DNA of 64,000 nt, taken from Klebsormidium nitens. Taxonomy: Eukaryota; Plantae; Klebsormidiophyceae. Below are positions 14,396-64,000 of the stretch, piece by piece. The position numbers and the translations under genes were made by a program. Below the pieces are notes generated by a model, which saw only the letters and a program-made list of their open reading frames with translations, was not told where the DNA came from and did no database searches. The stretch is from assembly GCA_000708835.1 (NCBI GenBank), contig DF236999.1, positions 62,001-126,000 on the forward strand. The letters run 5' to 3'. How positions within the stretch are numbered: the stretch's first letter is position 1; every line of letters begins with the position of its first letter.

Positions 14396-17300
14396 ATGGA
14401 CCTTAGCATGCGACCTGGGCTGTCGTCCGAAGCTTTGCTTGCAGTTATCAAGCGAAAACTGGTGGTCTGGGAGTCTCAGTTCCTCGCAGAGCATGGCCGA
14501 GAACCTGGGAAGTTGGACGCATATGCAGATGAGAAAATGGGTGAGCATTGAAAATCTTTATTGACCTGCCAAGCAACTGTATGTTTTGCTATCTTTGCAT
14601 GATGCGTCATCTGATTTGAGCTGAAAATGAGCCACCAGGTTTGCAAGCCCCTTGCTGTATGCGTTGTGGAAAGCCTATCCTCCAGTCCAGGTCATTGACT
14701 TGAGACCATTGGATAAATCATTGCAGCGGCGCTCTATCGGAAGTACGCAATGCTGAAAATGGCCGTCAACAGGAATGGAGCACTGCCGAGGGGGAAGCCA
14801 GATTCAGTAAGCAGCTTGATGACTTATGTTTGTGGCATGCTGGCTGCTTCTATTGCATGGAGAGGCGTCATCCGGCGGGGCAAGCTTCTCGTCTTGACGC
14901 AACAGCGATTGATCAAAAAACAAATCTGGTCTGGGTATGCCCTGGCCACAATACTGCATCACTTGAGCATGCTTAGCAAGTGCGCTTCACAACATTCTTA
15001 CCGGCGCACAGATTAAGAGGAAGAGGGCAAGGTTTTCCAGATACTGACTGTTTCAATGTTTCCTCCAGGCCTCTCATCATCTGGCAACAAAGGGGGCTAG
15101 TGCAGCCACCCAGCGTTGTCTCCTTGAATCAAAAGGCAAGAGGCAGTTTGAAGTTGATTCCCAGGTCAACAAAAAGCACTTGGCAAGGGCACCGTTGAAG
15201 GACAGGGCCAATCTGCAGAACGACAGCATGCAGGGGAACCTCCAACGGACAAAGCTGCCCAAGCCGAAGCAAAAAGGTGGGCTCTTAGGGGATGTTTTGG
15301 GGAATGGGAACAACCTTGCCAGCGCACGTGGAGGACACTCTTTTAGCAGATGGTTACCTTCTGATGGGGAGAGGGGAGAAGAGCGGTCCAATGTGTCCAC
15401 AGTCATCCCGGTTGAAGCTGACAACGCATTTGCTGAAGAAGGGCTTTCAGCAAACCCCAGAAACCCCTCGCACAATCAAGACCGGCTGAGCCGGGACCCA
15501 AACAGCCCGCAGCGATCACAGAAAGGAGCTAGCAGTATGATAGCTGACAGCAAGGTCAAGTTACCCTTTCAGCCGGCAGCGCAGGGTCAAGGGCGCAGTT
15601 CTGGGTCATACGCTGGTGCGGGGTCCTTTTCTAAGAAGCATGGCTCATTCACTGGGTTTGCCAAGCTGCAACAGGTGAACGGACTACTTGCAGAACAAGC
15701 CCCAGAGTTGACAGGATCTGGCCCTGAGCAAGAAGCAAGGGCACCTAGTAGCATGGATACAGTGCCCCCGTCTGAACGCCTCAGAACAGACAACAGCTGC
15801 CCACGAAGCAACGCGGTGGCACAAACTCACTTAGTAGGCATCGCAGCCTGTGAGTCGGAGATAGACAACGACCAGGGAGTCCAGCGGACAGAAGAGTGTT
15901 TCGCAGAGTCGATCGGGCAGGAGCGGCAAGCAGGGGAAGGAGCGGGCCAGGCGAACCAGGGGCAAACTGCTGGGGGGCATGCCGAGCTCCCTCAATTCAG
16001 CAAGCTAGATGGAAGGCGTCAAGAGCCAGGCAGTGCAGAGCCAGTACCGAGTGGCCAACAAGAAGCTGCAGAAGGAGGAACAGGGGCCGCGGTTAGTCGA
16101 CCGATAGAAGCAGACTTGGGCGCGAGCTTAGGCAGCAGCCTGCAGGCCGGCGGCGCCATCGAGGCCAGGCTCTTGAGATTGACGGTGGTCCAATTGAAGC
16201 AGCAGCTGGAAGGGCGGGGCCTCGTGTGCAGGGGCAAGAAGCAAGAGTTGGTGGCACGCCTAGTTGGGGCCATCTTGGAAGAGGGCGACCTGAGCAACTG
16301 GGAGGAAAGCCTGGGGGTGCTCGATGCCGGGGGCTGGGGTAACCCTTCTCTGGTGTTGAAGCGGGGAGCAAAGAGTGCAACAGCGAGGGGAGAATCTGGT
16401 CGGGGTGAGAAGCACGGGGCTGGCGCCGTTGCGGAGGGCAGTCAAGAGCAATGTGTGCAAGATGGAAAGAGTGCGGCAAGTAAGGCTTCGACAAAACGGA
16501 AAGCGGGAGCGAAACAGAAACGGGCAAAAGGGGCCCTTGCTGAAGGTGCAACCTCTGAGTCCAGCGACGAAGACGTGCAGATCTTCGATGGGGCTTCAAA
16601 GAGGAGTCTGCGGAGCAAATCTGAAAAGGGGGAGAAAGAAACCGCTGGCCAGGACGAAGATGCCCCGGAGACGGCCTCAGAGAAGAGCTTTGACTCAAAC
16701 GATCTCAGCGACTCGGATGACGACTACAAGCCACCGAAAGAAGGGGAGGCGGTGGCGGCAGAAGCAGAGGCTGCCCAGGTTGCGAGTGAGGGAGAAGCAG
16801 ATTCAGGGGACCCGGAACGGCAGCCTCGAGGGAAGCGGAAGAGAGCTGCTGGTGAGGAAAGCAGTCAGAAGAGGAGCAAGGCGAAAAAGGTGGCGGCCGC
16901 AGGGGAGCCAGTAAGCAGGTCGAAGGGGACGAAACGAAGTAGGACGGTGTCGGGGCCTGGTGAAGAGATGGAACGTGGGGGGACGAAGAGGGCAGCGGCC
17001 GCCAAGCGGAGGGCTGAGCTGCAAGCTGTGGGGTGGGGAGGGCCCGTTCGCACCAGCCGGGCTACTGGCAAGGCATCAGGCAACTTCTCGAGCGCGGGGC
17101 TGCCGGTGCGCGACAACTTTGTGCGGCAGACCATCAACGGCAGGGGGGGCGGGAGGAAGCGGTTCACAAACGGGGGGCGGTCTTCCTTCAGGAGTAAGAG
17201 CGGAACCCGGCCGTTCAAACGGAACTGGGGCAAGTCGCGGAGGGGCGGAAAGACGGGGTCGAGACCAACGGGCAGGGGGGCTGCTCCTGGGAGTGAAGAG

Positions 17301-20300
17301 CCTGGTGAGGGGGGGACGGGGGAGGGGTGGGGTGCTGAGGAGCAGCCGGGCCTCTTTAAGAACGAAGGCTGGCTGCCCGCAAGTGCAGGGTCCGCAGTCC
17401 AGACGCCGGAAACTGAGTCCCTGGGGGAGCCTTCGATACCTTGTCAGCTGGTTGACCAAGCAGAGCCACCGCCGGCCAGCGTCAGTAACTGTCCGAATGA
17501 TGCTGAGACGGAGGCAGCGATGCAGGCGGCCCGGGGGGATCCCTCCGAGAGCAACCTGCTGATCGTTCTCCAGCGGCTGTTTAGTTTCGACGACTTCCGG
17601 GAGGGCCAGCTGGCGGCCATTCAGCGGGTGCTGGCGCAGCGGTCGACCATGCTGGTGCTGCCGACAGGGGCGGGGAAGTCGCTCTGCTACCAGGTGGGAA
17701 CTCATCTTTCGTCTCTTTGTGTATCGAAACCAATCTGATGTGTAGTTTCTGCTTTGCTGAGGCGCACAAGTGCGCAGAAGAGGCGCAAAAGCCCACTCAG
17801 AAGACGACTGTATTCTCAGATTGCCCTGTTGCGAAAACGAGTATTATGCGTGCGGGTCAATACTATCCTTGACACTCAAGAGCAGACCGAACACAGTCGT
17901 CTTAATGCGATTTTATCTCATCGCTTCCGAGGGATTAACACCGTCTTCTGGAAGGGCGGCGCCTGACCCTCACTTTCCGGTGATGCCAGCTGCCCGCACT
18001 GCTGCTGCCGTCCCTGACCCTGGTCATCTCCCCGCTGGTAGCGCTCATGACGGACCAGCTGCAACACCTGCCTCCCTGCCTGCCCGGGGCGCTCATCAGC
18101 AGTGCGCAGGTGAGAAAAACACACCCTGCGAGGAAAGCTAACTAGCAGAAATACAATTTGCGAAAATCTTCTTCGACCTGAACCGGAATGTGACATGATG
18201 GGACCTCGTACTGGAGGAGTGCTGACCCTTGCCTCACGCCAATTGAATAGAAACATTTTGCAAATGGTGACTGGTTACGGGACCCGGATTTGCGTGCTCC
18301 ATGGACTGTCTCCGTAAACGCGTGTTCTCCGTAACCCTTTTTTGAGTTCCGTTGAAAAGAGTCAGCAAAAGTGACATTATTCTCCTTGGCAGGCCCCTTG
18401 GGAGAGCGCCAGCGTCATCGCAAGGCTGCAAGCCGGCGAGCTAAAGGCAAGCCTCCCCCCCGTCTTTCTGTCCGCCTACCCGCTCTTGCTTTGTGTCGAC
18501 ATGTCAGCGTCATGTGTTCGTTGGTCGCCGCTTTTCTTCTCTCGGTTCCTTCATAATGTCCATTTTCGAGCCTGGTTCTCATCCTTTAATAGTTTAGCAA
18601 GCGCCTCTTCTGTCGCGCTCCTCGTTGCTGGTCCCCTTCTCGCGGCCCTATTTTTTTCCCGACCACCTCTGCTGAAACCGGTCGATCGTGCAGGTGCTGT
18701 TCATTTCTCCGGAGCGGCTCTTCAGCGAGACGTTCCTTGCGGTCATGGCCAGCCTGCCGCCCGTGTCCCTGGCCGTCGTTGACGAGGCGCACTGCGTCTC
18801 AGAGTGGTAAGCAGCCAACGGGACCGTTCCATGTCTTTCGCCAGATTGTTTTTTCAATGATGCAACTCAGATACACGCCTTCGAGGAGCCGATTTTTCGT
18901 GACTGTCAGTACAACATCGAAAGGTGCATGTGTGCCCCGACCGCATTCTAAAAGGAAAAGCAGCGGAGAATGGATGAGCGGTCAAAAAAGGAGATCTCGA
19001 CTCAGACATGAAAACCCCCGCGATCTGCAATCCGCCGTTTGACACGTGCTGTTGACACGCCTCGTACAACCAGCAGCAAGCCGCTTCTCAAAGCCGATCG
19101 CACGACCCATCGATTATCCGGGAAAGAAGGTTGCCTGCGACAACGAAGTTTTGCTTGCCAAAGCAATCCAAAGCAGCCAACGTTATTCCTCCACTTCAAA
19201 AGGCCCCACCAACCGCTCCATTGCAGGTCCCACAACTTCCGCCCCTCTTACCACCGCCTCGGCTCCGTCCTCCGCTCCCGCCTGCGCGTGCAGTGCGTCC
19301 TGGCCATGACTGCCACCGCCACCCCCAAGACGGAGGCCGCGGTCGCGGCCGCGCTCGCGCTCCCCGATGACGCCATCATCCGGTCGGCGCGAGTGCGGGA
19401 GAACCTCCGCCTGTCGGTCAGCAAGGAGGCCAACAAGTGAGCGCGCGCGTTTCTGAGCTGAAGCATGATGTTTGTATCGCTTGATGCTTTTTAGGGAAAA
19501 CTTAAACATTCGTTCCGGGAGTTCTTTCTAGCCAACGATCGAACGCTTGCTCATATGTCCGGGCTAAGCATGCCGAGTGGTCATGCGCTTTCCCCTGCTT
19601 TAAGAGACGCCAATTCCAGAAGCACGAAGTCTCCCGTCCTGCTCAGCTTGTGAACGACCGTTGAAGGACCTTCCTATCTTTCGGCTAGGCAAGCCCGGAC
19701 TTCCTTGCATGAAACGCAGCCGTTGATTCCGATTGGTCCTTTCGTTCCGTCGATTTCAGGATGTATGCCCTGGCCGCCATGCTCAAGACGGGGCCCTGTG
19801 CAAAAGTCAAGAGCGTCATCGTCTACTGCATCTTCCAGGTAAGCAGAGAGCCCCGAAGGCCGCGTAGTTTCTCTGACGTTTTCTCTGACACAGTAGAACA
19901 TTCTCAGACAGCTCTTTGTGGACGAGGACCATATTGCCAGGTGCGTATGCCAGTAGTAGTTTAATTTAAAGGTTTCGGAACAGTCGTAGGACGACCTCTA
20001 TTTCTGAAAGCGAAACCCGATCTCCGTCTAAAATGCTGGTAACCTCTCCTTTCAGGCACAGACGGATCAAGTGGCCGCTTACTTGGAAGCCAACGGGATC
20101 TCTGCTAAGGTGGGTCCTCCGCCGGGCTTGCAGATTGTCTTTTCCACAAGTTGCCTTTTCGAGCTTGACAGCGCTCCTCATCGACGCTTGCAACGAAATT
20201 TGTATCATTCGAGCACATTCTGTAGGTTCTAGAAGGTCAAGAGTTGCAAGGTGGATTCGCTCGTCCTGCACTTACAATGAGGCGACTGCTTGACGCCCGC

Positions 20301-39900: not shown

Positions 39901-42900
39901 GTCTAGGACCTAGGAATGAACCCTGCTCTCCTGTAAAGAGAAGCAATGGCTCTATCTCCTAATGCGCAATCCCTTTTCGAGGCAAACATCACATCTCGGG
40001 GCAAACATCACCACTCCGCCTGAATTAACGCTGCTGAATAATTACCTGAGCCTTCTGTTCTGCTGCCAAAACGGTGTTCTCCACATCGGCGGTGGGGTCA
40101 CCGACGCAGTTGCGGATGTTCTTCACGTCAAGGCCTGCAGACACACACACAGGAGCGTGCTTCCCATTTAGATCCTGGAATCCTCTAGAGCGCCCGGTTT
40201 CCAAAGAATATACGCGCATTCAACTGCTACTACTACTTGCAAGGTGCACATTACCAGCTGATAACAAACACCTTTTTGCCATGCTAGAATGCGTTGCTTG
40301 CTGCAACCACAAGTACACAGGTTCTGGGACTAACAATCCCAGACCGCTAACAATCCCACACTAGAGCTGATCAAACTCGACGAAAACTCATGCTTGTGCA
40401 TATTCCTGCCAACGCCTCCCACCCTCTTTATCTCTGCAGACCACTTTGCATGAGAGAACCCTCGACTCACCCCCCAACTCTTACAAGAATCACAAATTCA
40501 TCATTCAACTTCGAGACGCTCACCGAGTGAAGTGATGACCTGCTCCGCGCACTCGGCGTTGTACTGCCCCGTAGCCATGGAGCAGCGGATCTCAAAGTCC
40601 GACACGTAGTCCCACCACACCCAGGGCTTCTTGGCCGCCGTCGCCTCACGGTACACGCACAGCTGGCGCAGGTTCTCAATGACGACATCCCGCCCGTCGT
40701 ACCCCTGCTCAAAGTCCTGCTCGGGGTCGGGCGCACAGTAGCGCCCGTTGTTGATGCACTGCAGCTGGCACTGCAGGCTGTCTCTGTACGAGTCGGGGCA
40801 GTACCACGTGATGTAGTGCGGCGTGAACAGCGTGAACTGCCCCTGCTCCAGGATCTGCGCGGCGGCCTTGAAGTCCCTGACGAACGCCGCCTGCGCGTCG
40901 CACTTCTGCCCGCACTCGTCGTTCGAGTTGGTCCAGAACTCGTACTCGACGCGCTCGTCCGGGTGCGCGATCGCCTCGCTCCAATCAAGCACGATCTGCA
41001 CCAGCTGCTTATCGGAGAGCGCCTTCTTGAGCTTGTCTGCCAGGTCCTTGGTGATGAGCGCCGACGGGATGGAGATTTGGGCGAGGTACTCATCGGCGGT
41101 GGGGTCATCCTCTGGGGCGTCCATCGTGATCAAGGGCTCGTCCTTGTCATCTGCGACGATGACGGCCGACGCGCCCGCCTGCTGGGCGTCCCACACCTTC
41201 TTGGTGAAGTAGCAGCCTGGCGGAGAGAACGGCTGGGCGGTGAGTATCTCGACTTGGCGAAGGGGAGGAGAAGAGAGTGGGGGGTACTTTGTGGATTTGA
41301 GGAGGTCAGAAACAAGAAGCCAAACACAGTGATACAAGTCACTCACAGCCTGTTGGTCTAGTCTTACAGTATGCGAATTAAAACCTGTTGTAAAAGGCTG
41401 GACAGATCTGATGCAACAGTGGCGGCAACCCAGGAAAGTGGGGAGAAGGTGCAAAATGTTTTCAAGTAATTGTGTACTAAGTAACTGTGCTGTGAATAAG
41501 TGTGCAAAGGTAAAATGAGTAGCATTTGTTCGAAATACATGCCCACACTGTTTTCATGGGCACTACACACGTGGCTTCACCAACTTAGGACAAAGCCCAA
41601 TCAACCCATGCTGCAACCACCAAGCTGACAAAATAACAGTCAAGAGAACAGTTGGACAGCAGATAAGAAAACTTGAAGCAGTTTGTATTCTCCTCGCTAA
41701 TGAAAACCTCCAAGTGCTGAAAATGCTGAGGTTAAAACTTGGGCTCCTTGTTTCAAGCTCCCTGAAGGTGTGCGAATGAAAGCCCTGTCGGTATCAAACT
41801 CAATACTTCGATGGTCACCTGGTTGAAGCTTTTCTAGGTGATAGTGAGGAAAAGCAGGACATCTGTTGCCAGCAAACCCTAAACAAAGTAGTAAAAGAAA
41901 ATTCTCACCCATGCAAGCAATAAAGATCCTGTTTTTGGATAGAAGCAAGACCTCTCAAGGAAATTTTCCAAGAAGGCTTTTGTACAATTCTAATGTTGAA
42001 GGGTTCAAATTGCTGAGAAGACAAGCCCATATCACACTTCATGTAGACTGCCCAAACTGAAGATTGTTACTATATATCAGATCGTTGAATCTTGAATAGT
42101 AAAAAGACTGGACAAAATACAAGAAAATAACTACGCCACCTGGAGCAATCAGGAGGAGACATATTCCCAAAAGGAAAAACTTGCCCCCAAAAAGAAACAC
42201 TCTAGGCCAGCAGACAAGAAAAAAGCCCACTAAGGCCAGGGGTTGGCACCCGAAACCAAAACAAACTCAGAGCTGGGTGGGCCACAAGACTCCTCAACTT
42301 GCAAATCCACATAACTGTTTATGCCACTTAGAACAGCCTTCTGGATGTTAATCTTACGAATCTGCATGCCATGCAGCTCGGGCAGTGAGTTTTGAAACCC
42401 CTTCCAAAGCTGTACCACAGCCACTCTTTCACAACGGAAGCTGAGATGACGATGCATACAACCTCCGAATACAGAAGCTCTTTTACCAAGAAAGAGGGAG
42501 CCCTAAAATCGAAGAAAGAGAGAGTCTGTCCAAGATCTGCTGTTTATGCAAAATTGGGGAACAACATGATCAACAAAAGGAGCAAGGCAAAGAGGATTGA
42601 ACGCAAAGAGGGGAGTTTCATGATGACAACACTCACTGCCTCTGTCGACCAAGACAATCTTCGGCAGCTGCCCTGCCTGCGTCCTGAAGTTGTATCCTCC
42701 ATCTGCAAACCCTGTACACGCGTCCTGGTCTACGCTGGGGAAGACAACAACCCCCGACAACGAGCCACCGTAATTTGGCGTCCCAAAGTTTGCGATTGAG
42801 CTGTCAAACGTGCCCTTCAATTCTTTAGGAGCTGTCACCCGGATGCTGTGGGTTTCCACAATAAACCGGGCGGAGCAGAGAGACGCCCACAGGCCCAGCA

Positions 42901-44377: not shown

Positions 44378-47300
44378 ATGACTTCTCCCCAGTCCGATGA
44401 GGTGGTGGCCGCCATCGCAGCTCTGTACGGCCCCGGCGAGCCGACACTGAAAGCCGCTGCCAATGATCTCTTGACCCGATTTGCGGCTTCCCCTAATGTT
44501 TGGCCCGTCGGCCTTTCTCTTCTGGACCATACCTCGGTGGAAGTGCGCTACTTCGCTGCCAACATGCTCCTCTCCAAAGTCCGCTCAGAGTGGCACCGGA
44601 CCCCACCGGAGCTGCGGGCTTCGCTGGCGCAGGAGACCGGCCGGTGCCTGTTCACACTGGCCGGTCACCCTGGGGCGCCCTGGGTGGTGGTCAACCGGTT
44701 GTGCCTCCTGACCGCTGCAATGGCGTGCAGAACCGCAGAGAACAGTGCTAGCCAATCCTCTCTCACAACCACTGCTTTACTGGATTCTGCATTCCAGACT
44801 GCGGCAGGGGCTACGGAGGGCAACCCCGGCGCATCTATGCAGCTTTCGGTTGCGCTGGGGCTGTTGCAGTCGCTCACAGAGGAAGTGGACCAGCTTGGGA
44901 GAGAGCGCCAGGTGGCGGCGCAGGAGCGCATGTCGCTACGAACGCAGGACGTGCTCCGATTGGTCGATGCAGTGCTGTCTGGACACCTGGGGGGTGGAGG
45001 GGACGATCGCTTGCCGGTCGTGGCGCTGCGCCTGCTGCACAGCTGGCTGAGGGACGATGCTACGAGCAGGGGGGTGACTGCGGGCTACCTGGCTCAGTCC
45101 CACAGCAGTCTTTTCCAGAGGGTGCTAACTAGTCTGTCTTCAAAGGACGGCACAGATCTTGAGGCGGCCATCGAAGTAGTGGTGCAGTTAGTGTCTCTCG
45201 ACGAAGCGAATGTGAAGGATCTAGGCGCGGAGGAGAACGCGGTCCGAATGGTGCTGGCAGCGGTGGCTGCGCAGAGGGGGCCGCTGCAGCAGGCCTTGGC
45301 GGAGGATCCAGATAGTCGCTTTGCCGGGGGGCTATGCGAGGTGGCGTGTACGGCAGCGGAGCACTGGTGGGAGCTGGTAGCACAGGTGGGGGATTCCCTT
45401 TGGAATCTGTTCGTTCCATTTATGAAAGTTGTGTTTTCATTTCGAATCCATGCAATATCCGTGCCTCAATTGATACTTTCTATCTTCGTTCTGAAAGTCC
45501 CTCGTGGTTCCTTGGTGACTCACACGATCAACCAATCTCTGGATCTATGTGAAAATTGAAGTGCCGTCGTTGGCGCTGTGATGGCATGACAATCAGCTCA
45601 ACCTCATTCAAACCTTATCAATCGAGCTTTGCATAGTGCTGGCCGTCCCAGACCCCATGACTTAAGGCGGCAGAGCCTGTCTTTCGCGACACGCTTAATG
45701 ACGGATGTAAGTCACAGCACCCGTCTCCATCTCTTGGGAGTATAGCAGATTTTAAGTCCTTTCCTGCCCAGTCCGATACATATAGAGGAGAGCAACCCAT
45801 GAATTTCCCTTTTCCTGTCCTTTCCCCAGGCATCCAAGCAGTGTCCAGAGGCAGTCCCCGTTGCTGAGGTAATGCTGACATGCGTGACCGACGGCGGCCA
45901 GGGCGTGGCTGAGCTAGCCCTGGACTACTTCTCCATGTTGAGCTCGGTGCCGCTGGCTGAGCGGCCGCCCGCCCTCCAGGCGCCACTCTATGTGCAACTC
46001 CTGCAAGGCCTTCTGAAGCAGGTGGGATCCAGAAATCATTTTCTGCCTGGCAACGCCTTGAGTGTCTGTCGCGGTTCATCAGTGCGGGAACTACTTTCGT
46101 CCAGGCTAGCTTCGAGCGGCTTTTCTCAGTGGCCTTCTACGAGGAAGCCAACCAGGCATTAGTGTGTGTTCGTCTCTTGCTCACAAAAGCAAGTTGCTTG
46201 CAGAATGACATCGACGATATAGCGACTTGTACGTTGTTGTTATCTTTGTGGCACCTTGTGCGGTGGGCATCCCGTTGCTGTCGCGAGACCTGGAATGTAA
46301 ACGCACGCTCGGTCTTGCCAGCCTCGATCGAGGCTCTGCCATGTTCGTCCGTACTTCACTTGCAAGCCAACTTCGGAATCGCGATGTCCTTTTCGTTTTG
46401 AAATAATCCTCTTCTTCGTGTCAGGGAAACCACCTCCGGAATGGTAAAGCAGTAGGTTTGGGATTGCCTGCCAGTACTCAGATCGCTGTTCGTGTCTCCT
46501 TTCTGCAGTCTGCATACCCACCCGACTTCACCACGTGGCAAAGGAGCAGTATGGACGCCGACAGCTTCCTGCGGTTTCGGGAGCTGTATGCCGCAGAGAC
46601 CTTGGACACATGTTACGCCGTGCTCGGCCCTGCATACCTCTCCGCTCTAGATCAGCATCTCAAGGTAGGTGGCATCTTCGCGCGCTTAGCGGAACAAATG
46701 TTTTGTACACTTCGTCCACAAACCCGCCACAAAGCTCGATTCTTCTAATCCGAAACGATCTGAATGCTCGATCGAAGATCGACGGGTCCGTTTTTGCCAG
46801 TTGCATAAGTGGAGTCTGAGTTAGGCGGCCCTGCGGTACAGTAGAGACTACCTTGGTGCCCCCATTTTGGGAAGCCCGTGTAGACGGCTCCTTGATGCAC
46901 GAAAGGTCGGCCTGTGCCCAAATCATTTTCACCTGCGAATCGTCGAGGGGAAACGGGAAAGGGCCCCTTTGTCGCTCTGGTCGACTGGAACTCTGCCTGA
47001 TTTCCCTTCACTTTCGGCGAACCACGCTGCGGGCTTTTCAAAAGGAGCTTGACTTCGAAAGCTTCACTCTGGGCTCATTGAAGAAAGCGTTGGGTGATCG
47101 GTCTCTCCTCGGGTTACGAAAGCTGTGCCGACAGCTCAACGTGGGGCAGATCTTACGAATGAATGTGAGATGTCCAATGGTTTTTCTGCTACGGATCCAA
47201 GTGCACGGACATACCTTTTGACATTATTACCTGGCGCCCTCTCATGTGGGTTCCAGGCTCGAGTAGCAGTTCAAAAAGGTTTGAGAAGGTATAGACTTAA

Positions 47301-49513
47301 GCAATGAAGCTGAACGGAAAAGATCCACAAATTATGAAACGGATAATATCCTAGTCAGGAAACTTGGTTTTTATGCTCCTTTTAAGATCAAGATTCTTCC
47401 ATCTCCTGCAGGCTGCCCGCTCCTGGCAAGCTCTAGAGGTCGCCCTTTTTGCCCTGCGGAGCATCGCCCCGACCATCAAAATCCGCTGCCTTCCTGTCAA
47501 CGGCACGCCCCCTTCCCCAGGCCAAGAGGCGGTCGAGGCCTTCTTCACTCCGTTCTTCGCCCAGCTCGAGAGGGACGACTTCCTGTCTCACCCCCTCGTG
47601 GGATCGAGCGCCGCTTCTCTAGTTGGCGCGTTTGGCGCGTGGATCTGCCAGCACCCCCAGTCGTTAAATCCCGCCGCGAGCTACGTCCTGAGGGGCCTCC
47701 GGACCAGCCTCGAAGGAAAGGTGAGGGCACGGGATAAATGTGATCGGTCGTGCCTGGTCGTGCCGTTCATTGCAAACGAGACGACTATCTCCGGCTGATT
47801 TTCAGCAGATTGATCGAAAAGTTGGATTTTTTTCTGCATTGAGATTTGCTTGTTGTGGGGGTCTCGCGGGGTCTTCCCGTATGCAAGCCGTCTAGGAGAA
47901 GTTGTTTCGCTCGAGGTTGTGTCAGACATGAACCCATACACTTCTGCAGGGTTGGAGGTTGGCTGTCGGTACTGCCCTTAGACGGCGTATGTCACTCTTT
48001 CGTTCAGACGTTGGTTCCTGTTTGGGAATAGGCAAGGACTACAACGTTTAGCCCAGTGCCTCTCATCCTCATCGCTAAGCTTGTCCAAGTCTGCAACCCA
48101 ATAACATATTTTCCCGTTGATTAACCTTCTGCCGACCTCGGAAACGTACCGGGTCTCCTCCTGCATTGTTCTCTCCGCATATATCCCGCACCTGATTCTT
48201 CCTCTCGTCTGCAGATGCCCGCAGTCTGGCAGGCTTCCGCGCGCGCCTTCCGCAGCCTTTGTATCAAATGTTATCCCCACATGGCGCAGCCCGGCCCCGT
48301 CGAGCAGCTGATCCAAGCGGTAGAGGCCAGCCTCCCACCCCTCCCAGAAAATACCTCCCCCTCTGCCGTTAGCGCCGACGATCGGACTACTGTCAACGAA
48401 GGACTCGCCACTCTAGTTGCCGCCCTCCCCTCCAGTGACGCCTCCAGACTGGGGGTGCGACTAGTGACGCCATGCGTGACGTCAATGGGTCGGTTGGCGG
48501 GCGCCAGAGATCCCCCTGCCACTGCTCTAGTTACATGCCTGGGCTTACTTTCAAGCTCGATCCGGCACCTTGAATTCGGACGTCCGGAGGATGAGGTGAA
48601 ACCGTGCGCTGCGCTCGTGCAGTTTTCGTGGCCCACTCTAGATACTCTTCTGACGACGCCCCACGTTCAGGCGAACGGTGATGTTCTCGTAGCATTGGGT
48701 GACGTGTATACACGTGCGATCCAGAGCCTGGGGCCCGAAGTGCTTCCGATCGCACACATGACATCACACCTCGTCAGCATCTTCGAGCGGTACCAGCACC
48801 CCGACTGCGTGCCACCCCTAGTTACGGCCGTGCAATCAAGCTCCGAGAGTGCACTGCAGTCCCAGGTCGACTTTCATCGGGGCGTGTTTGGCGCTGTCTC
48901 GGGCGCCTCTTTTGGGTGCTTGCATCGGGGTGAGCTTGCGAAACGGCCAGAAGTCTTGGGGGCTTTGTTTTCGCTGGCGTCAGCATACGTGGCACAGTGT
49001 CCAGCTGTAGTTGCGTCGGGGCCGCTGCTGCCGAGCCTTATTGAGGCAGCTGCCGCAGTGGTGCGGTTCCAAGACAAGGACTCGAGCAAGAGCGCACTCG
49101 CTTTTCTGACGGCCTTGCTAGAGCTCCCGGCAAAGCGGTCGGAAACGAGAACAATGATCGAGGGGGCCCTGCTCGCTGGGGCGGGGCAGCAACTGACTGC
49201 AGTGCTTCTAGTTGCGGCGGCTGATAAGTTACCACGGCAGCTACTTAGACTATTAGGGGGAGTGCTTTACTTGTTGACGCAGTATTCTCCCGCAGCGGTG
49301 GGGGTTTGGATTGCGTCGACATTCGCTGATGGAGCGTTCTTAGCGGTAGTGAACGGGGCGTTAGAGGAGAGCAGTCAGCGGCTAGCGGGGGAGGTGCTGC
49401 AAAGACAACCGCCGCTGCCGAAGCGGCGCTTTGAGGCGTTTGTAACGGACTTTGCGTCTGTTTGCAGACGAGAAGGGACGAATGACACACTGCTCGCATA
49501 TCAGATTGATTAA
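44378..49513 (+). CDS. Importin-beta family nuclear transport receptor (importin-13/transportin-SR-like), about 987 aa, 5 exons
   Basis: Exons 44378-45385, 45830-46021, 46509-46664, 47412-47720, 48215-49513; total 2964 nt, all joins phase 0. The N-terminus fits an importin-beta N-terminal domain (AIAALY...AANDLLTRF..SPNVW...EVRYFAANMLLSKVRSEW). HEAT-like helices follow (WQALEVALFALRSIA, SARAFRSLC). Confidence 0.85.
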
Positions 49514-55400: not shown

Positions 55401-57527
55401 TCGCTACTGAGGGAGATCAACGTGAGTAGACTGCTTGGAACTCTGTTATTTTTGCCTGACGGCGGCCACTTCAAGGCAATCAACGAGCGCGATCGTTTTT
55501 GCACGGACCTTTTCCCGTGGTGGTCAATGAGTCTGTTGGTAGTGTGGTCGGGAATGTGGATCGCCTCGTTCGAGCGACTTCTATGTACAAAGAACGCAAT
55601 TTTAAGAATCTCCAATCCACAAACCGTGAGACATCCGCCCGCAGATTGAATCCCTTGCTGACCATAGATGTCGTAGCAATAAATTAACGCACGCACTTCG
55701 AAGCGAATATCTGTCACCTTCAAAGCCGCACGACCTGAAACCATTGCCTGCAACACCGCTTTTGTCGATCTCCTGCTTTTACGCCTGACACTTGGTGCGC
55801 CCCTCAATCGTTCCTACCCTTTTTTGCAGTTGGAGGCCTCGGACGCTTTGGCCCGGTTCTACTACCCCCCGGTGGGTGCCGTCACCATCTCGTACCCCGA
55901 GTCGGCAGTTCGCGAGGAGCGGCTGGTCAACGGCAAGCTCAACGGCTTTGGACAGCTGCACCCGCGCAGCCAGGGGGTCGTCACGCTGGGTGAGGCCCCG
56001 CTCATCGACCCGTCGACTTCGCGACATTCTATAAGGTGTCACAAATCAGCGCAATTGCTGTCCAAAGCCTTCTCGTAAGCACTCTGTTTGGCAGAGGGTC
56101 TTGATAGGTGAGATCTCTGGGTCTCAGTTGGCTGCCTACGGTCGGAGGTTTTGGGTTCGTGACACTGATTAAGCATTACGGGACCAGTGATAGTGTTGAG
56201 ATGGTATTTGAAACTTTCTGCAAGCACTCTGCTTGCCGGGGGTTGTTTACAGTGTTAGTTACATAGAAGCCTCCTGTTCGAAGATGTAGAGAGTCTTCGA
56301 CGGTCGTAAAACATCTGCCAATGCAAGCCAACGAGACCCCCGGAAACCCCTCTAGGAGTCACCCAAGGCCCTTCGTTGTTTCCTTGGCTCATGAACTTGA
56401 CCTCTAAAGCATGTGGAATTTCAGCTTCATCGCTATTCGAGCTTGTCGTTCAACTCCGTCGAGATGCAGCGGTAGCACACTGGTCCTGGATGCAAATCAG
56501 CAAGGTCGGGCTCCTCTTAAAAGTGCAACCCAGCCAGATGATTCCACAGATCTGCTTTCGTTTTCACCCCCGTGTACGCAGCTCGAGTTTCGCTGTTCGA
56601 TCAAGCCTTCGGTCAAACTGCGCTTGAACTTCCCCAACGTTGCTTGGGATGTCGTTCCGAGAACCTCTATGGTTTCGGTCCTCTCCTTTGGGAAGAATTA
56701 CGAGTCGCTGGTCTGGGCAGATTGCGGTATGGAACCGGTGGCAGACTGGGCAGTGATTTGGTGGCTCCTCTCCTCTGCTCTGATTCACCTTCTTAAGCAA
56801 AGTTTTGGAGCCTCGCTCAATGTTGACGTCACTTCTCGCTCCGCAGGCACCATCTACAGCTCCGCCCTCTTCCCGAACAGGGCGCCCGAGGGCCGGGTGC
56901 TCATTCTCAACTACATTGGAGGGGCCTTGAATCCTGACATCGTGAACCAGGTGCGAACATTCAAGCCACTATCCTCCAACGGCTATTCTCTTTTCTACAT
57001 ATTCTTTTCGGTACAAACGTCGAAGATGTCAAGCACACCTCTCATCTCCGCGGACCAGGGTGCCAGGCAGCTTGCAGTTGAAGATCACTTTACATTGTAG
57101 GGATTAGGCATTCGTACAATAGAAGCCCGCCCTTTACTGAGTCCGCCAGCGAATTTAACCCCCATTCGGCTGTTCTAATTCCGTTGGCTTCTCTCAAGGC
57201 TGACCGTTCGGCTTTCTTCTCCAGTCGGAGGATGAGTTGGTGGCGCAAGTCGACAAGGACATTCGGACAATGCTGATCAAGCCGGACGCGCCCAAGCCCT
57301 TGAAGCACGGCGTCCGAGTGTGGCCGAAAGCGATCCCGCAGTTTACGGTGGGCCACTTGGAGACGCTTGAAGAGGCGCGGCAAGCCCTCAAGGACGCTGG
57401 CCATGACGGAATTATCCTGGGGGGAAACTACGTGGCGGGCGTGGCACTGGGGCGGTGCGTCGAGGGCGCATATGAGAGCGCCAAGGACATTGCAAAAGCC
57501 GCCGAGACGGCGGACATGTTTGTATGA
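52445..57527 (+). CDS. PPOX1: Protoporphyrinogen oxidase, plastid PPOX1/HemY type, about 582 aa, 9 exons
   Basis: Exons 52445-52957, 53426-53611, 53845-53929, 54297-54444, 54806-54886, 55253-55421, 55830-55989, 56847-56950, 57225-57527; total 1749 nt. Transit-peptide-like N-terminus; FAD motif [107 protein letters not shown]. Confidence 0.97.
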
Positions 57528-58292
57528 AGCCGTCGGATCGGAGCGCATTACGTTTGAGGGGGAAAAGTAGGACAATAATAATGAGTGGTATGCAACCATG
57601 CTAAGTTTGAACCGGCGTCTCAAGATTGACCTTTGCATCCTCGGCCTGGTTTTCTTTGCACAAGTGCTTGGCGGATTTTTCTGCCAAGGCCTGATTTGGA
57701 AAGCTAGCAAGTTACGGACATACAGACTGGACGTCTTGGTCATAAGTAAACGGCGCGCACCAGGGCACTCTTCAAGCTCACGATGTGAAACCAAAAGCTT
57801 ATGATTGCAAATCGTTTTGCCACGCGAACTCGGCCCCAAGTCGATCTTTTTGTTGTATCTGATAAGAGCAGACATTTCAAGTCTCATAAGATACACATGA
57901 TTGCCGTTGCTATTGAGCCTTAGTACGAGCTCTAGTGTGATGTATATATGGCTGCCAGCCCGCTGCCAGCCATGGTGGCGACACAGCTTTCAAGCTTCAA
58001 CGGCAGATGCATCACTGAATGACAATGCCACAAAAGTCAAACCGGGCAAATCAGATTTAGTTACAATATCTAGCTTTCGCTACCTACTTTATAATCTTAC
58101 TATCCAACAACAACATATCCTGCCGCCTTCGCTCACCACTTGCGCAACTCAAGTATGGTCCACTTCCGTGCAATTCGACGCGCGCGCTTAGTACAAGATA
58201 CCGCAAGAGGAAAGAGAGGGGGGGTTCGGGGGGGCGGCACGCCCCCCCCGATTTTTTGGCCTTCAATTTCGCGCCATATGCGCCGCCGTTGC

Positions 58293-58855
58293 NNNNNNNN
58301 NNNNNNNNNNNNNNNNNNNNNNNNNNNNNNNNNNNNNNNNNNNNNNNNNNNNNNNNNNNNNNNNNNNNNNNNNNNNNNNNNNNNNNNNNNNNNNNNNNNN
58401 NNNNNNNNNNNNNNNNNNNNNNNNNNNNNNNNNNNNNNNNNNNNNNNNNNNNNNNNNNNNNNNNNNNNNNNNNNNNNNNNNNNNNNNNNNNNNNNNNNNN
58501 NNNNNNNNNNNNNNNNNNNNNNNNNNNNNNNNNNNNNNNNNNNNNNNNNNNNNNNNNNNNNNNNNNNNNNNNNNNNNNNNNNNNNNNNNNNNNNNNNNNN
58601 NNNNNNNNNNNNNNNNNNNNNNNNNNNNNNNNNNNNNNNNNNNNNNNNNNNNNNNNNNNNNNNNNNNNNNNNNNNNNNNNNNNNNNNNNNNNNNNNNNNN
58701 NNNNNNNNNNNNNNNNNNNNNNNNNNNNNNNNNNNNNNNNNNNNNNNNNNNNNNNNNNNNNNNNNNNNNNNNNNNNNNNNNNNNNNNNNNNNNNNNNNNN
58801 NNNNNNNNNNNNNNNNNNNNNNNNNNNNNNNNNNNNNNNNNNNNNNNNNNNNNNN
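58293..58855. other. Assembly gap (563 N)
   Basis: Run of N characters. Confidence 1.
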
Positions 58856-58979
58856 TTTAAACATGACCGCGTCGGTCCATTCGGGGGGTTTCGATCGACG
58901 GTCCAGCTTTCGGCTATCAAATATTCTGTGTTTTTTCATGGCTGAATTATTTACCCTGAATCCCAACGTTGTCCATCAA

Positions 58980-59061
58980 GCGGAGATGGCCGAGTGGTCT
59001 AAGGCGGGTGACTCAAGTTCCCCTCTCTTCGGAGGCGTGGGTTCGAACCCCACTCTCCGCA
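58980..59061 (+). tRNA. tRNA-Leu(CAA), intronless, 82 nt
   Basis: Acceptor stem GCGGAGA/TCTCCGC with discriminator A; D arm GCC-GAGTGGTCTAA-GGC; anticodon loop CTCAAGT (CAA at 59014-59016); long variable arm CTC-TTCG-GAG; T arm GTGGG-TTCGAAC-CCCAC. Confidence 0.92.
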
Positions 59062-59093
59062 AAAATTAACTCGTCGAGCGAGTTGATCAATCC

Positions 59094-59098: not shown

Positions 59099-60483
59099 GC
59101 CGAATGTGACGGTCTGTCTCTTCGTATTCGCCGTAGCCAAATAGGCCATAGGCTTCTCATGGCATCATGGCATACATATGTGGTGTGTGTTTCTTTGCTC
59201 CTTCTTCAGTTGCTGGTCTCATAGTCACTGCTGAACTGCTCCCACAGTCCCACCTACCAAACGATCGTAGTACACCGTAACCATGGGCCGACTAACGCCG
59301 TGACGCTGCGAGCATTACGCGCTTGAGAGCCATTGGCATCCGCATGTGAACCTTCAGCTCCTTCTGAGCATGTGAAGCACAAGACACGCAGGCTGGTCAT
59401 GGCTTGTTGCGGTAGCTAAGGGCTATGTATATAACAGCCCAATCACGGTCCAATCCAGGTCCAATCTTTCTGTGAAGCTATACTTCATTGACGATTCAAG
59501 TCAACCATGAGTCGAAGCTAAGACTAACTAAGCTAGACTGCATGACCAAGATGCCAAGCATGTCCAGACAATGATAAGGCTATGATCGAGCTTGATCGAG
59601 TTGTAATTGCCCTGCAATTGCAACCTGAGAGCCAGATTGGCTATATGTATAAACATTCAACGTCATGGCACACACTTCATGGCGGCTTGCACCTAGTAGT
59701 GCTGTCATGCAGAAATTGAACCCCAAACCTGAGAACCAGATGTATTATGAAACTTGATTCGCCCTTGAAAATGTCCGGTGTCACGGGCAGCTCTAAGATG
59801 TATAGTACCATCAGTGTGTTCGACGTCCTCTTCCTTTTCGCCCAGAACCTAAGTTTGCACATGGCTAGTATAAATCATACGTATACTATGAGATCATTGA
59901 AGGCAGCAAGTGACTTTTGTAGCATGTGTACGCACATGTGATTCTTAGTCTGGATCTTTTGCAGCTTGACTGATGATCGATTATTGAAGCCGACAGTGAG
60001 CCAAAGACCAATTTCTAGCTGCAACGTCTCCCGACATTGGAAGTCCATGCAAACGCATACGGCCGATTCAATATAGTGAACATGCCCGTGAAGATGGTCG
60101 CGCCATCCAGAGTTACTATGTAACATACCTGGTGTCGGCCTTGCACTTGCATCATGTGCAATGATGCGGGCACGCCGAGTTGCCCTGCTGTACCGTGCAG
60201 GGCGATCCGTTGGCACAATCATTGGCGTGACTTTAAATCAAAATAATGCATTGCAGCGAGTCAACTGACCACAGCGACCACCATATCTTGGAGGACTTCC
60301 AAGAGCCTTATTGGCGGTGGTCGCTGGCATTAATTGCAAGACAACGCAATGAAGTTGTTCGTGATAAGTACAGGTTTTCTGAAGTGGATAAGGCCAGTAT
60401 TGGTGCGGATCGCAACACAGGGAGAGAATTTTTCGTTTGATCCTCATTGTTGTAACAATTTGCTGTTGTATGTACAAAAGGGG

Positions 60484-63400
60484 TCAAAAAGTGACAAGCG
60501 GACTCTCCGTCTTTGACTGTTTTTCTAAAATTATACATTGCACTTCCTGAGCGTGCTGTATCAACTCGTCAGAACCCACATTTCCCTGAAGAACTTTTGG
60601 CCATTGACTAGACGGTATGCAATCCTCTTTGGGCTCTATCAATGGAGTTTGCTCTAGCGGAATGCTGAGCGCAGACCTGGCGAGCACTTCCCCCAGGTCG
60701 GCTAGGTACAGGTCGGCAAGATCGTACTCGTAAATGTCGTCGTCAATGATACCGTTTGCGTTTGTGTATATGGCCGCAGAGAGGAAGAACGACCGGCCCG
60801 AAGGCAGGTGCATGATGTACCTAGGCAGGTAAAGGGCACGGTCAGCTTTTGTGCTGGTTTGAAACAGGTTTTACAAGATTGCCGGAGACAGGTTGAATAA
60901 GTCTGTCGAGTGTGGGAGGACTGATATCTGCGAGGGGGCCATCCGCTCTTAGAGACAGTCGCAAGAGGCGGACAGCTGTACAGCAAATGCCGGTCCAAAC
61001 GGCCATCAGAAGGGTTCGTAACCCCTCTATCATGAAAACGTGGTTACTGTAGTAAATTGCACACAGTTGCCGCCTGATAATACAAATCCGTACGGAGTGG
61101 CGAACTCACGCATTGTCGATGCTAAAACCGTAGGCCCTGCCGACCTTGTTGTAGATCCTCCAGTCAGCTTTCGGGCTCACTCGGCACAGGCCTGGCAGGA
61201 AGAACTGCACAGAGTGAGGGCCACGTGGCGCGTCTCAGAAGATCGAAGCAGAACGGCGGCCGATCGTCACTATCCTGCTGCAACTTTTCTCGTCAGGATT
61301 CAGCCACTTCCCAAGGAACTTATACTTCAAAACCGACGAGTGCTTCGTTCCTGGCATCCTTCGCAAAGCAAGATTCGACTGTTAAGTAAGATCATTGGTC
61401 AACATTTTCGAATTGAACTGCGCTATTGGTTAGTGGGGGCCTCGACCCACAATAGCCGGGAATCAGATGCAGACGACCTCAAAAGCAACGTCTTTGGGGG
61501 TGTGTTAACGCGCAGCGGCGCTGGCGCATCTGATTGACACCCCGTCTTTTTGCGGTGCTGACCTTGCAATAATCGTCGGGGTAGTGGCGGGAGTCGTACT
61601 GCGGGTTGCACGACTGGGAGGGGTACTGGAGCATGGCCTCCATTAGGACGGCCCGCTGTTCCGGCGGAAGCGACAGAACGGACGTGGGGCTCTGAAAAAG
61701 TGGAAAGAGAGAGGGGGAGCTCAAACAAGGTGAGGGAGGTTTTGGCTCACGGAAGTGCTCAACGAGCATTCCTGGGGCTCAAACTTCAGCGATGACTGGA
61801 AACCAGAGATGCAGCGGTAGACAATTCAGAAAGAGTGCGACAACTACTGGGGCAGGTTAAGAAGCTCTTGCTCCAACGAATGCGTAAAAGTTGTTCCGCC
61901 TAAGGAATTCCATCGACCAGCAGGACCAAGGCCCCAAAGCAACTTAACGTGCTAGCGAAGAGACGAAAAGGAGCCGAAGAGAGCACGGCTAGAACCGCGG
62001 GGCAGCAATACGAGCCGCTTACACGAGAGAAGGCGGGGAAAAACAGGGCGACCAGGAAGTCCTGGAGGTCGGTGAGGGTCATGTAGTTCTTCCAACTGAA
62101 GTCCATGGGCTCCTCCACCTGCAGCAAGCAGCGGGTGAATCAGGCAGGGGATCAGCAACTAGGGGTGGTCCAGTTCTTGCGCGTCGCTTCGGTTTGATAC
62201 GATGTATTTTGCGTGCAAGGCAGTCACAACTATCTGATGCTGATAGCCGAAGTTTGGCCGATTATCAGACAACTATGTTGGAGCACCGTGTTGAGGCTTG
62301 TGGAAACCGGAGCAGACTGGGAGAAGGGCAAAGGGGAACCTTTTGAGCGGGCTGCCTCCGCGGTCGAAATATTTCTGCAGGCGTCGCTGATCAACTTCGA
62401 GGATGGTAATGGAAGAAATAGTAGTCACGCAGACGTATCAATCAGCAAAGGTGTGTTTCTTTTAACCCCGTGTAGAACCCCTTCTCACCAGGCGGCCGTC
62501 CTCAATGTAGCCAGTTCCAACGGCGACCCCAGGCACCCCCTCCCGAGTGCCTAAGTCCAACCGACTGCGAGTTTCGGGGAGGCAAAAGGGCGCACTCTCG
62601 TCCCGCACTTCGACCCGGCCACCTAAGCGGGGGTCGTCTTTATTTCTGTCGGGAGGCGACAGCCCGAGGCGGTGGGTGAGACGACAGGCAGAAAAGCCCA
62701 TAGCCCACCTGAAAGCAGAGCGGCTATTGAGCGGAGGCAGAGCGGTTGTACGTGGAAGCAGATGGCTACCTATTGAGGTGTACGCTACGTTCTGAGGCAG
62801 GCGCTAGACAAGGGAAGCAGAGCAAGTGTGAAGTGAAAGGCAAATTTTGAGAATGTGATCTGCATGTCGGAGGTGGAATCTACTGGAAGGAAGCCGGGCA
62901 ACCTTGAGTGGGATTAGAACGGGTCACAAGTGGCAGTAGAGCGGAAAGGTAGTCACAGCACTGATCAACCCGAAATCGTCAGTGAGCAATTGTCACTTTG
63001 GTGCCATTTTGCAGTAATTTACTACACAATGTCTGCTGTAAAGAATGACAAGGAGGGAAGATACAAACTGACGTAGAACCGACAGAAAGAGTTCGCGACA
63101 GTGTATACTGCGAAAGTTTCCCCCTCTTCGACTGGCAACTCAAGCCACTTCAGAAGGCAACTCAGAAAAAAATGGGCATAATGTGTGGAGAACGTAGGCG
63201 GCTTTGGGACGGGAGAGCACCTTACATCCTCTCGTTGAGCTCAGCTTGACCAACAAAGGTGTAGAGCCGGTTGTAAGCGTCATTATCGGAAACCTGCACG
63301 ACAGCCCCATCACACGAGCGCCTGAGATCCTAAGAACAACAATCTTGTATGGAGATTCGATGCAGGTAGATCAGCAAAGGAAAGTGTCTTTCTATAAACT

Positions 63401-63722
63401 GGGCCTTGACCCAAGCGGAGTAGTGTTATAAGCACGAACTTGACAAAATTGACAAAGGATGGCAAAAAAACTTCGTCTAGACAAGATTTGGACCATGAAA
63501 GGTAGGATGACGATAATTGACTCTACAAGACTGTGTGCTAGGACGGTTTGATAACAAGCGACTGATGATCATCTGCATGTCAACTTACCAAGAACACTTT
63601 TCGAATCTCGTGTTTGAGGGTCACAAAGCCCCCCTCCCGGTTTGTCGGGTCTCTGTCAAAGATCTTCTCATGAGGCCCCAAGGGATGAAAGCAAAGGGGC
63701 GTTTGGATGTCAAGGCCAAGAT
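60484..63722 (-). CDS. Class A beta-lactamase-like serine hydrolase of bacterial type; 3' seven exons, 5' end outside the window
   Basis: Exons 63722-63589, 63293-63226, 62708-62489, 62118-62023, 61691-61563, 61204-61110, 60820-60484; six GT-AG introns with consistent phases. Spliced motifs: LKHEIRKVFLVSDNDAYNRLYTFVGQAELNERM, GTGYIEDGRLVEEPMDFSWKNYMTLTDLQDFL, MLQYPSQSCNPQYD...YPDDYCKFFLPG, RIYNKVGRAYGFSIDNAYI, FFLSAAIYTNANGIIDDDIYEYD...LADLG. Confidence 0.85.
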
Positions 63723-64000
63723 CTGTTCGAAACAAAGGGGCACTTTGTTTAAAACTAGATCTTATCAACATTTTCATTTGTCAATCTAGACGAACGAGTT
63801 TCATCACAATTGGGGCTATCTGGTTCCCTCCGCGTAGACTTACTATATCAGGGCTTCCACGTTCTAAGAAAGAAGGCAACAGGGAAAGCTGGATTTGTAG
63901 GCAAGATGCAAGATGTTACCACAGATAAAGGAGGTGGCAGCGGTCGCTTGAGCCTTGAGCAGAGTGGACTTTGTAGACACAAAGACAAAAGAGGAACTTC

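Follow-up and report, generated by a model that had tools for sequence, protein, structure and literature searches.

Klebsormidium nitens KFL_000500260 encodes a predicted serine hydrolase of the class A β-lactamase/penicillin-binding fold, as judged from its sequence and structural model, and has relatives across Archaeplastida. Most of the gene lies on the minus strand of the stretch of DNA analyzed here (64,000 nucleotides of contig DF236999.1, GenBank assembly GCA_000708835.1, positions 62,001 through 126,000 of the forward strand; herein the window). The gene is, as its phylogeny indicates, a vertically inherited member of an Archaeplastida-wide clade, bacterial in type but old, and we tentatively connect it with the peptidoglycan of plastids. 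The sequence of KFL_000500260 is already public and carries the automatic name “Beta-lactamase class A catalytic domain-containing protein”; the novelty lies in recognizing a distinct subfamily that spans Archaeplastida and in the proposed link to plastid peptidoglycan.

The last seven of the 10 coding exons occupy positions 60484 through 63722, and the spliced product that they encode (359 residues) is 100% identical to residues 89 through 447 of the 447-residue KFL_000500260, which came up in a word search that started from a moss ortholog and whose record is titled “hypothetical protein KFL_000500260 [Klebsormidium nitens]”. Four RNA-type runs, each from a different study (X5, X6, X10, and X16), were used, and their assembled contigs were aligned to positions 59500 through 64000. 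Each run yields one spliced contig of 1.2 to 1.65 kb that skips the introns, which shows that the gene is expressed and its transcript spliced; in two runs, one junction each is supported by no more than a short overlap or by an alternative acceptor. The six introns in the window (295, 517, 370, 331, 358, and 289 nt) are all of the GT-AG type, as had been proposed in an initial annotation made from the letters of the window. A seventh intron starts just above position 63722. The transcript contigs extend ∼520 nt past position 63724, outside the window, and the peptide at their end (EKARRLSGDL) continues exactly into the upstream residues of KFL_000500260. Three upstream coding exons lie 6 to 657 nt past the window end (L081:4001-4652, scaffold DF236999.1, GCA_000708835.1), giving nine spliceosomal introns in the full gene, and an in-frame TAG stands 6 nt upstream of the ATG. 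The catalytic SxxK motif, which the initial annotation had placed upstream of the window, was recovered with these exons as S67-A-I-K70; the Ser67 codon opens exon 3.

KFL_000500260 matches the Pfam family PF13354 (Beta-lactamase2) with 44.9 bits (E = 1.1e-11; gathering cut-off, 22 bits) over positions 18 through 211 of the 214 in the hidden Markov model, which together with the predicted fold described below bears out the initial assignment to a bacterial-type class A β-lactamase-like gene. The exon with the SDN motif, taken alone, reaches positions 81 through 107 of this model at a subthreshold 16.2 bits (E = 0.007), and Pfam and NCBIfam scans of single-exon translations gave no match beyond it. 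Searches of Protein Data Bank (PDB) sequences with single exons gave no match, the last exon drew no usable match from the ESM Atlas in a feature search, and no relative was confirmed when genome contigs were scanned for exact peptide patterns of this exon. Run with the same exon against 1.84 billion representatives, phmmer returned 126 matches, with many of which the 359-residue product aligns end to end (40 to 51% identity; E = 1e-60 to 1e-105). Matches of the family profile to PDB sequences are marginal only (E = 0.004 to 1; 2j7v, E = 0.07).

The sequence blocks on which the initial annotation had relied (VSDNDAYNRLY, NKVGRAYG, EPMDFSWKN, and FFLSAAIYTNANGIIDDDIYEY) are all present on the minus strand; a further block, QYP..PQYD..DDYCKFF, is real and spans an exon junction between DDYCK and FF. 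Conservation was counted in an alignment of 102 homologs (87 bacterial and 15 eukaryotic in the comparison of N termini). The acylation residues are nearly invariant, with S67, K70, S135, and N137 each kept in 100 homologs and K324 and G326 in all 102; D136 of the SDN motif is kept in 93. The K-T/S-G motif is replaced by K324-V325-G326, position 325 being Val or Ile in 72/102 homologs and Ser or Thr in 15/102. The residue preceding P233, in the slot of E166-P167, is Glu in 35/102. KFL_000500260 itself has E232-P233 followed by N240 (kept in 97 of the 102), at a spacing unlike that of E166 and N170. At the level of the family, class A acylation residues are thus combined with the lack of a conserved deacylation glutamate.

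An AlphaFold2 model of KFL_000500260 (predicted local distance difference test, 90.4; predicted template modeling score, 0.87) begins its folded domain at approximately residue 10 and holds the entire class A fold within residues 8 through 389, with ∼120 extra residues present as insertions. A Foldseek search with the model returns BlaB of Streptomyces cacaoi (2wuq) as the top match, together with class A β-lactamases (E about 1e-10). Structural alignment with VIA-align gives Z scores of 23 to 24 and an rmsd of ∼3 Å over ∼250 residues (CTX-M-14, TLA-1, LRA-5, and PSE-4), which cover nearly the whole target chains; the Z score is 23.7 for LRA-5 and 23.3 to 23.4 for PBP-A (2j7v and 2j9o).

The two ends of the protein differ between bacterial and eukaryotic homologs. 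A hydrophobic, signal-peptide-like N terminus is present in 66/87 bacterial homologs vs. 0/15 eukaryotic ones, and the eukaryotic members carry long, partly conserved C-terminal tails. A tail motif, DC[IT]PSSxW, is common to K. nitens (EDCIPSSQW), mosses, a liverwort, a fern, and transcript-derived proteins. On sequence criteria the subfamily is marked by its large insertion, by K-V/I-G, by a signal peptide that has been lost, and by the conserved tail. Such tails could mediate interactions and, with the predicted cytosolic location and the first rank of BlaB in the Foldseek search, would suit a catalytically quiet, BlaB-like sensor or regulator that binds peptidoglycan fragments or β-lactams and signals the state of the plastid. 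We consider such a role decidedly improbable: the acylation residues are kept at 98 to 100% in bacteria and eukaryotes, as is typical of an active enzyme, and the structural ranking does not separate BlaB statistically from true enzymes.

Distribution, Descent, and Bacterial Relatives

Presence in eukaryotes was read from several searches, among them one moss-seeded and one lycophyte-seeded, each covering its best 120 matches. Named eukaryotic homologs come from at least 17 genera of Glaucophyta and Viridiplantae. They include the glaucophyte Cyanophora paradoxa; the early green lineages Prasinoderma, Cymbomonas, and Chloropicon and an MMETSP transcriptome; the streptophyte algae Mesostigma, Chlorokybus, Klebsormidium, Mesotaenium, and Spirogloea; the bryophytes Physcomitrium (LOC112295621), Ceratodon, and Calypogeia; the lycophytes Selaginella and Diphasiastrum; and two species of the fern Adiantum.

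A tree of 74 rows (22 from Archaeplastida and 52 bacterial), including full-length KFL_000500260, was computed with IQ-TREE under LG+C20+F+G4; the tree is unrooted, and its bacterial part is a polytomy. Archaeplastida separate from the bacteria with an ultrafast bootstrap (UFBoot) of 98 and a Shimodaira–Hasegawa-like approximate likelihood ratio test (SH-aLRT) value of 98, and Viridiplantae are recovered at 98/80. A longish branch carries K. nitens at the base of Viridiplantae, outside the other streptophytes; forcing a streptophyte clade costs 7.4 log-likelihood units and is not rejected (approximately unbiased test, p-AU = 0.385). As the orthologs span Glaucophyta and much of Viridiplantae and group against the bacteria, any transfer must be ancient. 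The best fit is a single acquisition that preceded the glaucophyte–green split, with vertical descent and losses thereafter. The initial annotation had seen in the gene a candidate domesticated horizontal acquisition; the bacterial type of the gene stands, with any transfer moved back in time, but the acquisition is not specific to this lineage, as the Archaeplastida orthologs form one group. Among the outcomes that the annotation had named as speaking against its own reading, a vertical pattern of orthologs is nearly what was found, while the Beta-lactamase2 profile is matched and both SxxK and expression are present.

If Klebsormidium had acquired the gene horizontally in recent times, or if bacteria had contaminated the assembly, this would explain why bacterial homologs (up to 51% identity) are as similar to the K. 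nitens protein as plant ones are. A FastTree tree of the partial protein placed it among bacteria, and the better trees put it at the base of Viridiplantae, not with the streptophytes. We rejected the FastTree placement as an artefact, since the full-length protein under a site-heterogeneous model falls within Viridiplantae, where a streptophyte clade is statistically acceptable. The nine spliceosomal introns, the spliced RNA, and flanks with plant genes (a vacuolar sorting receptor and cactin) identify a nuclear gene, as first annotated, and not contamination; K. nitens and plants have in common the eukaryote-only C-terminal motif and a lost signal peptide. A recent origin is thus barely credible. 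The case is a caution for scans for horizontal transfer, in that a bacterial-looking gene in an algal genome can be old and vertically inherited.

A scan of Genome Taxonomy Database (GTDB) species genomes with the family alignment found 184 bacterial loci, of which the best 80 were analyzed. These 80 belong to Acidobacteriota/Thermoanaerobaculia, Planctomycetota/Phycisphaerales, Verrucomicrobiota, and a few Proteobacteria. No cyanobacterial locus, as an endosymbiotic origin would lead one to look for, is among the best 80 of 184. The nearest bacteria, from the first three of these groups, reach 44 to 51% identity vs. 36 to 39% for Bacteroidota (Hymenobacter and Chitinophagaceae), so that the “Bacteroidetes-type” likeness given in the initial annotation proved weak.

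In 25/80 of these loci, from Acidobacteriota, Thermoanaerobaculia, Planctomycetota, and Phycisphaerales, the gene lysA stands upstream on the same strand, and in most of them it adjoins the homolog (e.g., L001:2337-3845 and L024:2424-3926). Its product, meso-diaminopimelate decarboxylase, scores 419 to 441 bits against TIGR01048 (cut-off, 298). A gene for an LD-carboxypeptidase (LdcA, Peptidase_S66) lies near the homolog in approximately 5/80 loci. An M20 peptidase gene and a PF00144 β-lactamase-type gene were each seen near the homolog in 4 to 5 of the 80. Fusion to a GHL10 domain (PF02638) is found in a Cyanophora paradoxa protein (P0072) and in one metagenomic protein (P0080); we take this family to include the Escherichia coli denuded-glycan hydrolase DigH/YddW. 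Two other metagenomic proteins (P0061 and P0045) have the hydrolase fused to Peptidase_C39_2.

Proposed Function

From its motifs and model, KFL_000500260 is most likely a low-molecular-weight penicillin-binding protein (PBP) of the DD-carboxypeptidase- or endopeptidase-like kind. In the proposed mechanism, Ser67, activated by Lys70 and helped by Ser135 and Lys324, would attack a peptide or amide carbonyl, and an acyl-enzyme would form at Ser67. Peptidase-like rather than β-lactamase chemistry is favored because the deacylation Glu is unconserved and K-x-G mostly has Val or Ile in its middle. The enzyme would trim or recycle the stem peptides of plastid peptidoglycan.

That plastids have peptidoglycan is established for glaucophytes, for streptophyte algae (K. 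nitens among them), and for mosses and ferns. We tentatively prefer the reading of KFL_000500260 as a penicillin-binding-type peptidase that acts on plastid peptidoglycan or its fragments, and put it somewhat short of an even chance. It is suggested by a penicillin-binding fold with intact acylation residues and no conserved deacylation glutamate, a pattern like that of PBP-A, and by the phyletic pattern, the Cyanophora GHL10 fusion, and the lysA and LdcA neighbors in bacteria. The initial annotation had raised plastid peptidoglycan as one option, with which the phyletic pattern is consistent. Some prasinophytes have a full peptidoglycan pathway, including a PBP (PMC4815162), and plastid peptidoglycan has been visualized in K. 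nitens, according to the account of Takano et al. 2018 in PMC9434261.

Several points weigh against this reading. The full KFL_000500260 carries no targeting extension, where the initial annotation had allowed for a targeting peptide beyond the window, and this predicts a location in the cytosol, away from intermembrane peptidoglycan; lacking signal and transit peptides, the protein would either work on released fragments within the cytosol or reach the envelope by non-canonical targeting. The middle T/S hydroxyl of K-T/S-G normally helps bind the substrate carboxylate; K-V/I-G loses this hydroxyl, and the substrate may therefore not be a D-Ala-D-Ala terminus. Glu232-Pro233 of KFL_000500260 may mimic E166-P167, and the synteny in bacteria may partly mirror shared ancestry. 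That seed plants, red algae, and core chlorophytes are missing from the family is a provisional result, read from the names above the bacteria among the best 120 matches of the moss-seeded and of the lycophyte-seeded search. Finally, no role for the family is described in the literature on plastid peptidoglycan that was covered, outside which lies the moss peptidoglycan-hydrolase work of Utsunomiya et al.

The same features can be read as those of a cytosolic serine amidase or esterase with a non-peptidoglycan substrate (a D-amino-acid amide, a diaminopimelate- or lysine-related amide, or another metabolite), its co-distribution with peptidoglycan being coincidental or indirect. The missing targeting signal would suit such an enzyme; K-V/I-G suggests altered binding of the substrate carboxylate, the model places the large family-specific insertion over the active-site side, and the commonest bacterial neighbor, lysA, belongs to the lysine pathway and is not a wall-synthesis gene. 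However, the signal-peptide-like N termini of 66/87 bacterial homologs indicate a periplasmic, wall-facing role, the Cyanophora fusion and the LdcA neighbors point to the wall, and the phyletic pattern is much as for DipM (PMC4015805). We regard this explanation as unlikely, though one to be taken seriously.

A working β-lactamase, which would destroy the β-lactam antibiotics of microbes nearby that would otherwise block penicillin-sensitive plastid division, has in its favor a class A fold that bears SxxK, SDN, and KxG, and E232-P233 with the subsequent conserved N240, loosely like E166-P167...N170. The taxa with the gene are the very ones in which such protection would be of use, since β-lactams inhibit plastid division in peptidoglycan-retaining lineages (PMC3398972, PMC9434261). 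Yet the Glu is found in only 35/102 homologs, the spacing to N240 differs, and the hydroxyl of K-T/S-G is missing in most; the protein has no secretion or targeting signal, in contrast to true class A enzymes, which have an export signal, and its sequence similarity to characterized class A enzymes is marginal. We judge this explanation improbable, and the action on β-lactams that the initial annotation had considered is doubtful, as the residue in the E166 slot is unconserved in the family.

If the preferred peptidase reading is carried further, the family could be the missing low-molecular-weight peptidase of plastid peptidoglycan, acquired once from a non-cyanobacterial bacterium ahead of the divergence of glaucophytes from green plants, stripped of its signal peptide, kept where plastid peptidoglycan persists with PBP and DipM, and lost along with these in seed plants, red algae, and core chlorophytes. 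This fuller scenario is possible, but we would not count on it. The enzymes that remodel plastid peptidoglycan are poorly known (DipM, a class A PBP, and PPASP as a candidate), and the family, with its penicillin-binding fold and a distribution that for the most part tracks plastid peptidoglycan with PBP and DipM, is a concrete candidate; if the scenario is true, the effect of β-lactams on chloroplast division would have a second target besides PBP1A.

Exon Structure, Transcripts, and Surroundings

The exons within the window are listed in Table 1. The acceptor AG of exon 4 lies at 63724-63723, and the codon of D89 is split with the upstream exon outside the window. Exon 6 encodes H168-R169-L170, which is conserved, together with the greater part of the family-specific, β-hairpin-rich insertion, and P233, F236, and N240 of exon 7 are near-invariant across the family. 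The last exon encodes β4/β5, the fold's C-terminal helix, and a tail of the eukaryote type, which bears DCIPSSQW.

Table 1. Features of KFL_000500260 in the window
Feature	Positions	Strand	Evidence
Coding exon 4 of 10 (residues 89 through 133)	63589-63722	-	Transcript contigs X5, X6, X10, X16; splice sites; identity to KFL_000500260
Coding exon 5 (residues 134 through 156); S135-D136-N137 at 63290-63282	63226-63293	-	Transcript contigs; splice sites
Coding exon 6 (residues 157 through 230)	62489-62708	-	Transcript contigs; model secondary structure; conservation
Coding exon 7 (residues 231 through 262); E231-E232-P233-M-D235-F-S-W-K-N240	62023-62118	-	Transcript contigs; splice sites; conservation
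Coding exon 8 (residues 262 through 304); end ...QYPSQSCNPQYDSRHYPDDYCK	61563-61691	-	Transcript contigs
Coding exon 9 (residues 305 through 336); K324-V325-G326 at 61147-61139	61110-61204	-	Transcript contigs; splice sites
Coding part of last exon (residues 336 through 447); stop TGA at 60486-60484	60484-60820	-	Transcript contigs; splice sites
3′ untranslated region	60420-60483	-	Transcript contigs, which end between 60420 and 60436

An alternative acceptor of exon 9 at 61191, used in contigs of X6 (minor) and X10, drops 13 nt; the resulting isoform is probably unproductive, because the frame shifts and a stop follows ...DDYCKACAE. Contigs within introns (60863-61107, 61237-61468, 61695-61949, and 62742-63204) have a depth of 2 to 6x vs. 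22 to 40x on exons, which suggests unspliced precursor RNA or retained introns. A stop-free, coding-like segment at 62276-62437 was rejected as an exon; it is intronic and is used by no transcript contig.

The gene is flanked by cactin on one side and an amine oxidase gene on the other. Elsewhere, the window has long exons of a vacuolar sorting receptor with VSR_TRX and PA domains (40501-41451, minus strand), an importin-β-like gene (44378-49510, plus strand), and an open reading frame (ORF) with a SAP domain (15180-17735, plus strand). A segment at 56411-59069 is AT-richer (GC content, 0.435), with overlapping ORFs of 230 to 310 residues on both strands that have no Pfam match. The surrounding window is ordinary plant-lineage nuclear DNA.

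Comparison with Known Systems

Class A β-lactamases (TEM, CTX-M, TLA-1, and BlaC; PF13354/PF00144) are like KFL_000500260 in fold and in the order of SxxK, SDN, and K-x-G, at a sequence identity of 12 to 21%. In contrast to them, KFL_000500260 has a β-hairpin-rich insertion where the omega loop sits, and in its family no residue equivalent to E166 is conserved, K-V/I-G replaces K-T/S-G, and the eukaryotic members lack a secretion signal.

PBP-A (Tll2115, Thermosynechococcus) and LRA-5, which count among class A-like DD-peptidases or weak lactamases, match the fold of KFL_000500260 as well as the β-lactamases do. In sequence the match to PBP-A is marginal, and PBP-A-type proteins are without the large insertion. 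PDB entry titles describe PBP-A L158E and LRA-5 V166E, in which a Glu is put into the omega-like loop, and, according to the title of a preprint, a Val-to-Glu change switches MSMEG_6194 from a DD-carboxypeptidase to a β-lactamase (bioRxiv 10.1101/2025.11.20.689485). This one position has thus been examined as a switch between peptidase and β-lactamase activity. These Glu mutants of PBP-A, LRA-5, and MSMEG_6194 would, by analogy, be the best functional model for the family.

Among the known or candidate accessory proteins of plastid peptidoglycan, DipM and PPASP have a phyletic pattern much like that of the family (PMC4015805, PMC4815162), although their folds (LytM/M23 and LysM) are unrelated to it. 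[quoted passage not shown] Moss DipM1 has no predicted transit peptide and yet is located at the chloroplast surface (PMC4015805), and the family likewise has no targeting signal. The systems differ in descent, that of DipM being reported as cyanobacterial, whereas the nearest bacteria of the family, among the best 80 of 184 loci, are of the Planctomycetes–Verrucomicrobia–Chlamydiae (PVC) group and Acidobacteriota. They also differ in the prasinophytes, where the family is present, whereas green algae yielded no DipM and the studied prasinophytes and glaucophyte yielded no PPASP.

The bacterial proteins annotated as “serine hydrolases” (from metagenome-assembled genomes of Phycisphaerales, MFN7019696.1, and of Acidobacteriota and Thermoanaerobaculia) are 44 to 51% identical to KFL_000500260 over ∼300 residues. 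They are ∼400 residues long, have a signal-peptide-like N terminus in 66/87 cases and no C-terminal tail, and are often encoded directly downstream of lysA; their motifs and insertion are held in common with KFL_000500260.

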